64,000 nucleotides of DNA from Oikopleura dioica (lineage: Eukaryota; Animalia; Chordata), in NCBI GenBank assembly GCA_907165135.1, contig OU015569.1:10540001-10604000 (forward strand), read 5' to 3'. The stretch's first letter is position 1. Each line of letters starts with the position of its first letter. The notes under the pieces were generated by a model. It was not told the DNA's origin. It saw nothing but the letters and a program-made list of their open reading frames with translations, and made no database searches. The position numbers and the translations under genes were made by a program. This document shows positions 21,077-44,798 of this stretch, piece after piece.

Positions 21077-21515
21077 GAATCACATGATTGAATCTCTAGA
21101 ACATGTGATCCCATCTTGTGTTTTTCACTTTTTTGTCATTAGTCTCCAACGCCAGTTAGGGGAAAGGAGGGTCCGAAAGCGCAAGAATTACAGGTAATTT
21201 TCGCGATTTTTTAACAAACAAGGTTTTAACTGTATTTTCTTTTCAGATCATGGAGCTGCCTAATGATCAGCAAGAAATCGAGCTCCAAAGAGGAACCCAA
21301 AAGGGGCTCGGGTTCAATATAAGTGGCCATCACGCCATCACCCGCCTCTTGACTCCAAATCGGAGATACCGACACGGAGAAACCAAACCAGAACTCAAAT
21401 TTTCTGTCAATACCTGAATAAAATCAATTTCTCATTCATTACTTTTTTGGAAGGTTCTAAAGAATTTTTCTCAGATTCGAAAGACCTTCCAAAATCTTGT
21501 TGTTTCTTTCTTCGA
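21077..21515 (+). repeat. Copy 1 (solo arm) of a spliced PDZ-fragment repeat unit
   Basis: Homologous to 42195-42620 (+) and 42912-43355 (-). Shares TCTAGA, exon 1, a GT-AG intron (21194-21246), GAAATCGAGCTCCAAAGAGGAAC, CCTGAATAAAATCAATTTC and the 3' tail. Confidence 0.9.
21250..21417 (+). CDS. Candidate 55-aa micropeptide with a PDZ betaA-GLGF fragment
   Basis: MELPNDQQEIELQRGTQKGLGFNISGHHAITRLLTPNRRYRHGETKPELKFSVNT*. The stop overlaps AATAAA. It falls below the 60-aa ORF-track cutoff. Expression is unknown. Confidence 0.4.
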   Translation: MELPNDQQEIELQRGTQKGLGFNISGHHAITRLLTPNRRYRHGETKPELKFSVNT

Positions 21516-22127
21516 TAACTTACAGTAGAATATTCTGAGTGAGTTATTCTTTCTGAGGGAGTAACTGCCTGTAGTCTGTCGGCAATAGAGGTTGAAGCTT
21601 TATCCTTTTTGAGCAGCGCGCGGCGTGGGAGATTTTTGTCCAATCGGCGGCCGTCTTTCTTCAATCCAGAAACTCTCCACTTCTACGTCGACTCCCTCTT
21701 CCCAGGTACAATCCCACTCAGCCTGCAACTGCCTGTAATTGCCATTCATTTCTCCTAAACTTAACAAATAGAGAAGGCTGATTCACGCTTCCATCCAAAT
21801 CAACTTCTATTCAATAATAATTAAACAGAGTCGTCAATTATAGAATATCAATTTTCGGTTGAATTCAATGATTTATCCGCCTTTTCATAAAGTAATCGCT
21901 CTTCAAATTAAGAATTTTTCAATAATTACAGAAAGATTCAAGAAGCATCCAGTAATATTCGATTTTCAGGGAGAATTAATCCTCATTCGGGAGTTTTTCT
22001 GACGATTTCGACTATTTCTTTCTTTCTTACTTGATTTCGACTTGAAAAACAACCCTTTCTCACCCCCATTTTCTTTATTTCCAACGTCTACTTTTCAGGA
22101 TCGACCAAAGAAACAAAGAAAAAGAAA

Positions 22128-41771: not shown

Positions 41772-42703
41772 AGGTCTACTAAACTTATATATTTCTTTCC
41801 CGTTCAATTATTATTTCGAATAAAACCAGAATTACTGATAAAGGCGTCTTGTTATCCCTTTGTTAATTATCAAAGAAGCCTGAAGGCCACCTGCTTCGTC
41901 AGGAAGTTCATCCTATCGTCATCGCGCGTTGAATTGAAGCAAGTTCTAAAGGCGAAATAGCGCTGCGGTGGCCTTGGTCTTTCGTCCTTCGCCAACTGTG
42001 ACAAATGCGTCAAACCGATAAAAAAGCATTCGAATAAATTGTCGACTGCGCAACTTCGGGCGAAGCGCCAGTCCCGCGCTATTTATTCTTTGGTGCCGCG
42101 AATGTCCAAGGAAGGGATTAACCGCTCTGAATCGCTCTAAATTAAACGTGCACTTTGTTTTTAAGTTAAAAAAAGAGGCTAAAAAGGAAAACATTCTCTA
42201 GAACACGGGATCCCATCTTTGTGTTTTTCACTTTTTGTCATTAGTCTCCAACGCTAGTTAGGAGAAAGGAGGGTCCGAAAGCGCAAGAATTACAGGTAAT
42301 TTCACGTTTTTTTTTGTGAATAAATTTTAACCCGGAGAATTTTCAGATCTCGAGGTCAAAGATCGCGAAATCGAGCTCCAAAGAGGAACTCAAAAGAGGG
42401 GCTCGGGTTCAATATCATCCTGGAAAGGACCGACAGAAAAAAGACAAGTCGAAAAAGTCCAAGAAAAGAAAAGCGAGGAAGTAATCCACGATCTGTCTCT
42501 CTCAAACCTGAATAAAATCAATTTCATCTATATTTTTTCAAATTTTGGAAAGATCTGAGGAAAAGTTTTCTAATTCAAAAGACTTTCCAAAATTCTCTTG
42601 ATTCTTTCTTTATTTCTGCATTGTTACTAGTAGTAGATGAGCTCTGCCGAAAGAAAATCGGTATAGTTCCCGGTTTTCCGCCGAAAAGGGGATGAAAAAA
42701 GTT

Positions 42704-42775
42704 TGCTGTAACCAGGATTCGAACCTGGGTTGTCACGGCCACAACGTGAAGTACTAACCACTATACGATTACAGC
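42704..42775 (-). tRNA. tRNA-His (GUG)
   Basis: GCTGTAATCGTATAGTGGTTAGTACTTCACGTTGTGGCCGTGACAACCCAGGTTCGAATCCTGGTTACAGCA: 72 nt, full cloverleaf, A and B boxes, T6 terminator at 42695-42700. Confidence 0.97.
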
Positions 42776-42783
42776 GGGGTATA

Positions 42784-42855
42784 TAGCAGAGGGAGGTTTC
42801 GATCCTCCGACCTCTGGGTTATGGGCCCAGCACGCTTCCGCTGCGCCACTCTGCT
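42784..42855 (-). tRNA. Initiator tRNA-Met (CAU)
   Basis: AGCAGAGTGGCGCAGCGGAAGCGTGCTGGGCCCATAACCCAGAGGTCGGAGGATCGAAACCTCCCTCTGCTA: A1-U72 pair, three G-C anticodon-stem pairs and A54, all eukaryotic iMet hallmarks. Confidence 0.98.
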
Positions 42856-44188
42856 GGAAGCGAAGGCGCAAAATTGACGATATGAAGTAAACCTACATAC
42901 GTTGCAATTTCCTGCAAAAAAAGAAGAAAGAAACAAGAGAGAATTTTGGAAAGTCTTTTGAATCAGAAAACTGTTCGTCAGATCTTTCCAAAATTTGAAA
43001 AAATAAAGGTGAAATTGATTTTATTCAGGTTGGGGAGAGACAGATCGTGGATTACTTCCTCGCTTTTCTTTTCTTGGACTTTTTCGACTTGTCTTTTTTC
43101 TGTCGGTCCTTTCCAGGATAATATTGAACCCGAGCCCCTCTTTTGAGTTCCTCTTTGGAGCTCGATTTCGCGATCTTTGACCTCCAAGATCTGAAAGTTA
43201 TACGGATTAAAACTTATTAACAAAAAAACGTGAAATTACCTGTAATTCTGGCGCTTTCGGACCCTCCTTTCTCCTAACTAGCGTTGGAGACTAATGAAAA
43301 AAGTGAAAAACATGAAGATGGGATCCCGTGTTCTAGAGATTCCATCACGTGATTCCGAAAGTAGAAAAAGGAAAAAGGAATAAAGATTCTGGAACATTCG
43401 AAAGGTGTTATCAATTTCTGAAATTGCTGAGTTTTGTGTTCGGCCTTACTCTAACCAACCGCTGTGGTATTTCGCCCGCCTCAATAGAGCCCATGATGAC
43501 GAGAGGATGAACTTCTCGAGTCACTCTAGCGCGGCGGCGAGCGTTTTTGAAGTGACGAGTTGAGGGATCGGCGGCTAACGGGGTTACTTGCATTCAGAAA
43601 TTTCGCCAAAGAGAAAAATCGGCTCACGAAAGTTCGAGCGTTTTTTCCTATTTCCGTGGAACTGGCGAGGCGCTAATCAGCGAAAATAGCGCGACCCAGC
43701 CACAAACATTTTCTAAAGCGATCAGCCAAACTTGATTCTTCGCGGAAGGAAATGAGGGTACACACAATGGCAATACGACGAAACACAAGTTACAGTAGTT
43801 GATCTTCATTATCGAAGCAGAGTTCAAAGAGCTTCAAAACTAGGCGGCTTTGCGGCTCTCACGTCCTCGAAACATGGTCGAAATTTCAAGAGAAGCTTGT
43901 TTCTTGAACAACTTGGCCTTGAATTATGTCAACTTACGCTCTATCATAAATACGAGTCAACGATCCTAGCGCAACTTTAAAACGGGCTTCTCGCCAGGCT
44001 GTGAACTCGGGGATCGAAAGAGGATCAGCTCAAGAAGCATGACCAAAAAAGAACCCTTCTCCTCCATAATCTTATTTTCTGCGACGTAGATGGCATATAA
44101 TACTTTCTTTTTTCCTTTTTTTTGACGCTTTTAGCCTCTGAAATACTGTAGAAGCGAGACTCTTAGATGGTGTCATTGACAATGGAAA

Positions 44189-44798
44189 ATGAAAGTACCA
44201 TTTTGGTGCCCTGACGATGAAGTTGATCCTTGCGGAGCAACAGAACAGCTCAATCTCACGGGAAAATACCCCGACTACTTGCTGGTCTCCAAATTTTATC
44301 AAAAGTCAAGAGTTGATGAAGACCACGCAGAATCAGACTTGGCGATTGCGAATGATAAAGTCAAAAGGATGAAGAAAAAACTAAATGAAGCAGAAAAGGC
44401 TCTCACGAAGGCAAAGGCAAGTGTCAAGGCAAAGAAACAATGGCGCAAAAAAGTTCAAGGAAGGCTCGTTTATGTGGTACAAAATTTGGTTGAAAATGAA
44501 AGTGAATCAGAAGACGGTAAGGATGAAGGAAATCTTCAACAAAAGCAGTTTAATAAGCTTTTCAGACTCCTCAGATGATGATGAGCCCCCGGAAAAGAAG
44601 GCGAAGAATGATGATGGGAACGAAAAGTCTCCATGCAAGGTCTGCTTCTTCCACTTCGACGACGAGCGCCCAGAAGCCTCCCTCACTTCCTGCGGACACA
44701 AGGCTTGCGTCCCCTGTCTCGATGCTCTCCAGCCGAAGACATGCCCAATCTGCCGTAAGGAATTCACTGAGGAGCAGATTCTCAAGCTTTTCGACTGA
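44189..44798 (+). CDS. Coiled-coil plus C-terminal RING-HC (C3HC4) protein
   Basis: Two exons joined by a GT-AG intron (~44518-44567). CKVC...TSCGHKACVPC...TCPICRKEF..EQILKLFD*. Confidence 0.85.

Follow-up and report, generated by a model that had tools for sequence, protein, structure and literature searches.

According to the staggered-break model, reportedly put forward by Ranz and colleagues in 2007, Drosophila inversions arise from staggered breaks. Transfer RNA genes are known to occur as dicistronic units, as in the yeast tRNA-Arg/tRNA-Asp pair and the Schizosaccharomyces pombe pair of tRNA-Ser and initiator tRNA-Met (tRNA-iMet). In the chordate Oikopleura dioica, genes for 5S ribosomal RNA (rRNA) and the spliced leader (SL), both transcribed by RNA polymerase III (Pol III), lie in inverted repeats in the OKI2018_I69 assembly (PMC8008620), and lineages of the species, among them those of Okinawa and Bergen, which split roughly 25 million years (My) ago, differ by thousands of small rearrangements (PMC11067885). 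The locus considered here is a palindrome in a 64-kb stretch (the window) of the X-specific region of OKI2018_I69, positions 32978-53593 of which are 100% identical to locus L007 (GCA_907165135.1, OU015569.1). Two inverted arms, each a copy of a small gene-like unit termed U, enclose one tRNA-iMet gene and one tRNA-His gene. The structure is probably a lineage-specific inverted duplication of an orphan unit of RNA polymerase II (Pol II) type around a resident tRNA pair, tied to micro-inversions, and such a local rearrangement scar fits the evidence better than a transposon that carries tRNAs.

The arms (42195-42620 and 42913-43339) align over 430 columns at 93.5% identity in a gapped alignment (E 8e-151), which bears out the inverted arms of about 420 bp given in a preliminary description of this DNA and refines the limits of the right one. 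The ungapped blocks of this alignment measure 247, 81, 42 and 42 nt and are 97%, 98%, 95% and 86% identical, respectively; the arms differ by about 28 substitutions and indels, and their outer limits are also unlike. The spacer, described earlier as some 290 bp with two intact tRNA genes, is indeed 292 bp of unique sequence (42621-42912) in which ARAGORN and Rfam both recover the two genes, and the inward ends of the arms stop 84 and 58 bp from them. Both arms read inward, through TCTCTAGA, an exon, a GT-AG intron and an exon with AATAAA (Table 1). Tandem Repeats Finder (TRF) detected no tandem subrepeats inside the arms, apart from short A-rich runs at the arm edges. Because arms of 93.5% identity enclose a unique spacer, a solo paralog of U stands 21 kb away, and two flanking elements, L and R, have an older inverted paralogy of their own, the structure corresponds to a palindromic segmental duplication, in which sequence already present nearby occurs twice, in opposite orientations, on either side of a unique spacer.

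Table 1. Features of the palindrome, its tRNA genes and their surroundings (window coordinates)
Feature	Position	Strand	Remarks
Left arm, copy of U	42195..42620	+	5'-truncated, without E-box segment; no ATG, no gene model
Left arm, pyrimidine tract and CATTAG acceptor	to 42244	+	
Left arm, 51-nt exon	42245-42295	+	
Left arm, GT-AG intron	42296-42346	+	
Left arm, terminal exon	from 42347	+	
Left arm, AATAAA	42511-42516	+	
Left arm, hairpin	42541-42594	+	
Right arm, copy of U	42913..43358	-	complete
Right arm, E-box segment	43340-43358	-	GAATCACGTGATGGAA
Right arm, 51-nt exon	43290-43240	-	
Right arm, GT-AG intron	43239-43191	-	
Right arm, terminal exon	from 43190	-	
Right arm, AATAAA	43025-43020	-	
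Right arm, hairpin	42995-42942	-	
tRNA-Met(CAT), initiator-type	42784..42855	-	predicted first cistron; ARAGORN and Rfam
tRNA-His(GTG)	42704..42775	-	predicted second cistron; ARAGORN and Rfam
T6 run	42695..42700	-	the pair's sole terminator-like signal for Pol III, 4 nt beyond tRNA-His; direct reading
Solo third copy of U	21077..21513	+	about 160 bp downstream of a bHLH gene
g16433 (CAG5099310.1)	42978..43593	-	public AUGUSTUS model, 135 aa; orphan, no Pfam domain
Left AAAAAGGAAAA	42181..42191	+	3 nt outside left arm
Right AAAAAGGAAAA	43365..43375	+	25 nt outside repeat end, 6 nt outside U
Outer element L	41856..42066	.	Bergen ortholog L008 8310-8517, 70%
Outer element R	43408..43753	.	Bergen L008 8876-9190, 71%; collinear with peroxidase gene in both lineages

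The window was compared with the orthologous Bergen locus, a 23-kb segment of GCA_000209535.1, FN653027.1 (L008). The tRNA block at 42691-42889 of the window corresponds to L008 7949-8148 with 92% identity over about 200 bp, and the Bergen tRNA genes (L008 7962-8114, minus strand) have the same order and strand, separated by a gap of 7 bp that is free of T-runs, and are followed by a single T-run, as in Okinawa. Neither blastn at a word size of 7 nor nhmmer with a four-copy profile (best E 0.13) found a copy of U in this 23-kb segment. Since Bergen carries the same pair at the orthologous place without arms, the tRNA pair is an ancestral resident of the locus and not cargo; the arms, by the same comparison, would represent either a gain on the Okinawa side or a loss in Bergen.

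The flanking elements give some indication of how the arms could have come about. L and R are older inverted paralogs (41903-41969 against 43458-43515, 69%), share the motifs GATGACGA-N5-6-TGAACTT and GGTATTTCGCC-like, and are conserved between the lineages (about 70%) to about the same degree as neighbouring coding sequence. Neither has an Rfam match or a consistently open frame, the sole stop-free conserved frame running outward, antisense to exon A of the gene model g16433. Between the Okinawa window and L008, collinearity extends over the tRNA block, R and the peroxidase gene; only L has moved and flipped, its Bergen ortholog (L') lying on the other side of the tRNAs, in opposite orientation and in tandem with R. 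Because the position and orientation of L differ between Okinawa and Bergen whereas the orientation of the tRNAs does not, two nested inversions are proposed, in a succession that would account for every orientation. Starting from a Bergen-like order of tRNAs, L' and R, a first inversion would have turned the tRNAs together with L', and a second would have turned the tRNAs together with U, duplicating the U adjacent to the breakpoint; the outcome would be that tRNA orientation is restored, L is flipped on the far side and the new left arm is truncated. The arms most likely arose by inverted duplication during a micro-inversion of the tRNA block, through staggered breaks, or alternatively by duplication and subsequent recombination between the arms. 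As a separate observation, the Bergen spacer between L' and R (L008 8641-8820), the expected site of U, contains an imperfect 180-nt palindrome of its own, 62% self-complementary and with GC-rich ends (GCCTTTGCGGGTAAA / TTTACCCGCAAGGGT).

The unit itself was defined by aligning the two arms with the solo copy and with L001, an 874-bp metagenome contig from ENA. U is about 440 bp long. It opens with a promoter E-box segment and a pyrimidine tract with CATTAG, continues with a 51-nt exon (exon B) that a GT-AG intron of 49-55 nt separates from a terminal exon (exon C), and closes with a hairpin; its terminal part consists of an invariant 20-nt block around AATAAA followed by the 54-nt hairpin. 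The E-box segment, GAATCAC[G/A]TGAT[G/T]GAA, is found in the right arm, the solo copy and L001 and not in the left arm, which is without the 17-20-nt 5' end that the right arm and the solo copy have in common. Splice sites and AATAAA are invariant among the U paralogs, and the stem of the 3' hairpin, which scores better on folding than shuffled sequences do (z from -2.5 to -4.1), is preserved by two compensatory changes among three sequences. In light of these conserved parts and of the preserved hairpin, U has the predicted anatomy of a spliced, polyadenylated Pol II-type unit. The arm layout first described, inward-facing with a GT-AG intron and AATAAA, therefore stands in outline, with one correction: on the evidence of the public gene model g16433, what had been called a short exon is the 3' end of an intron or outron, which is followed by the 51-nt exon.

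The 64-kb window contains three copies of U only, all of them inside 22 kb. The solo copy and the arms have in common a 5' island (88-92% identity), exon B (94-96%), a 48-nt island in exon C, the poly(A) region (70-77%) and the hairpin (72-74%), as against 58-62% in the intron, which is saturated. Apart from the 48-nt island, the terminal exon of the arms is mostly unrelated to the solo copy, and the intron of the latter, together with a patch of about 95 nt, is unrelated to the arms. L001 is the sister-lineage ortholog of the solo-copy locus, 87% identical and downstream of the same bHLH gene, and it is a mosaic, solo-type in its 5' half and intron and arm-type in its 3' half. This mosaic structure indicates that U paralogs swap patches, whether by patch replacement or by gene conversion. 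The patch of the solo copy (21310-21405) is unrelated both to the arms and to L001 725-815, L001 being arm-type there. The solo copy has no inverted partner and no tRNA or Rfam RNA gene nearby; a minus-strand open reading frame (ORF) of about 50 aa at 21600-21751, beginning MNGNYRQLQAEW, converges on its 3' end. At a permissive E-value Rfam gave no credible match in the arms and their flanks. As a small gene-like unit with islands 88-96% identical between paralogs and a saturated intron, U may merit follow-up.

U does not look protein-coding, as judged from its copies. No ORF is common to them, no ATG occurs in the relevant arm exons, and a 1-nt indel where the terminal exon begins leaves the two arms without a common frame. 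The solo copy has an ORF of 55 aa, the L001 ortholog of which stops after 26 codons under the standard code. The terminal exon had been called PDZ-like, a label that traces back to the tetrapeptide GLGF and nothing else and that has to be withdrawn: Pfam PDZ (PF00595) has no match at E<=10 in the arm translations, the 55-aa ORF or g16433, PDZ proteins are missing from the phmmer matches, and GLGF in the arms lies in a different frame from the EIELQRG that precedes it. The model g16433 joins an exon A outside the arm (43593-43450) to both right-arm exons. Among 1.84 billion representative proteins its product has one match, the L001 ORF, and when the ORFs of the arms and their vicinity were looked up by exact match, nothing was on record; g16433 is probably non-coding or mis-joined. 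Having neither a start codon nor an upstream exon, and with its frame shifted by the 1-nt indel, the left arm is most likely a duplicate that is dead or does not code for protein.

The tRNA pair comprises the sole tRNAs of the window, with Rfam scores of 62 and 59 bits. Eukaryotic initiator tRNA-Met is distinguished by an A1:U72 pair, an anticodon stem closed by three G:C pairs, and a T-loop with A54 and A60; the tRNA-Met gene, read directly, specifies A1:U72, the three G:C pairs and an AUCGAAA T-loop, and so carries the initiator signature. The two genes lie 8 bp apart with no T-run between them. From this narrow gap and the lack of an internal terminator we infer a dicistronic Pol III unit. 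To our knowledge, no pairing of iMet with His has been described, and a seemingly dicistronic iMet-His pair conserved for about 25 My may merit follow-up. Transcription of the locus can be pictured as follows. Pol III would transcribe the pair independently, on the minus strand and probably as one dicistronic precursor ending at the T6 run, while the right arm, which g16433 includes as its 3' part, may be transcribed with that gene and the left arm is probably inert. Any RNA made from an arm would undergo splicing and stop at AATAAA and the hairpin, short of the tRNAs.

Several points weigh against the inverted duplication tied to micro-inversions. The two-inversion history is fitted to two genomes only, and U may be missing from Bergen because it was lost there, in place of having been gained in Okinawa. 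A dispersed family of U is possible, the copy count covering the 64-kb window and the 23-kb Bergen locus. The three copies of U share their 3' limit within 10 nt, as a discrete cassette would, although the same picture would result from old duplicates of which only the constrained parts are left. Finally, the arm introns are 84% identical as against 93% elsewhere in the arms (Fisher p=0.045), and this higher intron divergence hints that both arms are constrained and that neither is dead. Together with the mosaic of L001, these figures are also what the analysis offers on arm-to-arm gene conversion, the process that keeps the arms of palindromic duplications more alike than would be expected for their age.

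The common 3' limit leads to the alternative that survives best, although it is still unlikely, in which U is a cassette, mobile or prone to copying and low in copy number, that inserted on each side of the tRNAs in separate events with its 3' end facing them; such a cassette would resemble the tRNA-proximal targeting of Ty3, Ty1 and the Dictyostelium elements TRE and DGLT-A. Besides the near-identical 3' limit of the three copies, two copies have the same 5' limit, both arms point at the tRNAs from a short distance, and U is missing from the Bergen locus. However, U contains an intron and so is not a retrocopy, and no copy shows terminal inverted repeats (TIRs), TG..CA ends or an abutting target-site duplication (TSD). 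Near the solo copy there is neither a tRNA gene nor an Rfam RNA gene, the clustering of all three copies inside 22 kb is what local duplication predicts, and two metagenome pattern scans with invariant 20- and 26-mers of exon B gave 0 matches. Word shares of 8-9%, seen in RNA sets and marine metagenomes, match what the conserved tRNA part alone would give. Related readings of U were tried and set aside. As a tRNA-targeting solo long terminal repeat (LTR) it fails in that homology runs 10 nt past the sole candidate TG, the flanking pentamers differ where such elements have a TSD of 4-6 bp, and there is a GT-AG intron with conserved splice sites. A Helitron is disfavoured by the lack of a CTRR end, and an SL RNA by the fact that U is not known to resemble the spliced leader.

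The conservation within U also bears on whether the locus works through RNA. The preliminary description had raised the prospect of a convergent Pol II pair over Pol III genes that could yield double-stranded RNA (dsRNA) or a long hairpin. The Pol II anatomy part of that proposal is upheld by g16433, the splice sites, AATAAA and the hairpin; the arm RNAs, however, would be like-sense, and with AATAAA, the hairpin and two tRNA genes intervening, any dsRNA or hairpin RNA would need read-through. A functional RNA locus, in which the arms are constrained non-coding RNA (ncRNA) units and read-through yields hairpin RNA with a stem of about 425 bp and endogenous small interfering RNAs, or in which the tRNA pair is modulated, is quite unlikely. 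In its favour are the conservation of the 5' island and exon B (88-96%) relative to the intron, the invariant splice sites and AATAAA, the two compensatory pairs and good folding of the 3' hairpin, and the greater divergence of arm introns than of arm exons. Against it, the left arm is without the E-box segment, the arms are separated by a canonical poly(A) signal, a hairpin and the two tRNA genes, patch exchange of the kind seen in L001 can mimic constraint, and arm words occur in no listed RNA run, which counts for little as those runs come from a mismatched lineage. The more specific proposal that U would be an undescribed, selected, spliced ncRNA gene of the Okinawa clade, with the palindrome acting as a source of hairpin RNA or as a recombination switch that flips the tRNAs, cites the 5' island of about 100 nt, the 48-nt exon island, the poly(A) region and the covarying 3' hairpin, and must be regarded as very unlikely.

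A composite foldback (FB) or Pack-MULE-like transposon that captured and moves both tRNAs and made an 11-bp TSD, as was at first suggested, is highly improbable. The long inverted arms and the exact 11-mer AAAAAGGAAAA on both sides are what such an element would show. The 11-bp direct repeat is real in that it is exact at both sites; it does not abut the repeat, standing 3 and 25 nt away from its ends, and the bases that do abut those ends differ between left and right, in contrast to the 9-11 bp TSD directly next to both TIRs that a Pack-MULE leaves. The right copy, moreover, sits in a (GAAAAAG)x3 microsatellite (43364-43385), and the 11-mer occurs six times in the window. Shared words of at least 11 nt are found in 0.2-0.4% of random flank pairs and in about 3.5% of similarly A-rich pairs. 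The outer ends of the arms are unequal, and TRF found no tandem subrepeats of the kind that characterize FB arms. In a Pack-MULE, captured host fragments lie between the TIRs, travel with the element and are missing from the empty orthologous site; here the gene-like sequence makes up the arms themselves. An arm-free site does exist in Bergen and holds the same tRNA pair in place and in the same orientation, the opposite of what a tRNA-mobilising element predicts.

An assembly artefact, that is, a foldback-chimeric Nanopore read built into the scaffold, is conceivable for a Nanopore-based assembly (PMC8008620) and yet highly improbable, given the roughly 28 arm substitutions and indels with unlike outer limits, a spacer that is unique and conserved across lineages, and DNA runs from three studies that hold 26-42% of the words sampled.

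Some further observations concern the region between R and the peroxidase gene. A RING-finger gene (44189-44798, plus strand; 186 aa in the OKI annotation) lies there in Okinawa and is missing from the corresponding stretch of the Bergen locus, L008 9190-9563. On the minus strand at 44036-44129, a weak, sub-threshold Rfam match to the C/D small nucleolar RNA (snoRNA) family snoR31/Z110/Z27 (29 bits against a gathering threshold of 45, E 0.12) shows no obvious C/D boxes; it overlaps an island of 60 nt whose conservation with Bergen (L008 9351-9409) is 75%. Tara/ENA contigs with relatives of the peroxidase (L002-L005) were rejected as comparison loci, having 64% nucleotide identity, no synteny and no tRNAs.

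Set against known systems, the locus resembles Pack-MULE and FB elements in its long inverted arms, its host-gene-like sequence and the A-rich 11-mer on both sides. It differs from them in that the gene-like sequence forms the arms and is not cargo, what would be the cargo was at the site from the start, the direct repeat stands off from the ends, the arms are without subrepeats and no multi-copy family is evident. The value of the analysis is mainly corrective: for what resembles a foldback transposon with tRNA cargo, a rearrangement scar is the better account, and the tRNA pair is older than that scar. The pair of tRNA genes is like known dicistronic tRNA genes in its head-to-tail arrangement, its spacer of less than 10 nt, its single downstream T-run and a spacing conserved between two lineages about 25 My apart, the difference being that co-transcription is here deduced from sequence only. 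The 5S/SL repeats of O. dioica (PMC8008620) likewise place Pol III genes within inverted-repeat structures, and in the same genome; there, however, the Pol III genes are the repeated unit and number tens of copies, whereas in the palindrome the unique spacer holds the tRNAs and Pol II-type gene-like units form the arms. The duplications left by staggered-break inversions in Drosophila differ from the palindrome in three respects: the inner arm ends coincide with the natural 3' end of the unit, divergence is uneven between intron and exon, and the history is drawn from two genomes. They are like it in that a short breakpoint segment is present twice, in inverted orientation, flanking a small inverted block, with one copy cut at an arbitrary point, in a genome where small inversions are very frequent. 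The locus would offer a base-level example of how micro-inversions in the extremely scrambled genomes of O. dioica can duplicate breakpoint sequence beside Pol III genes.

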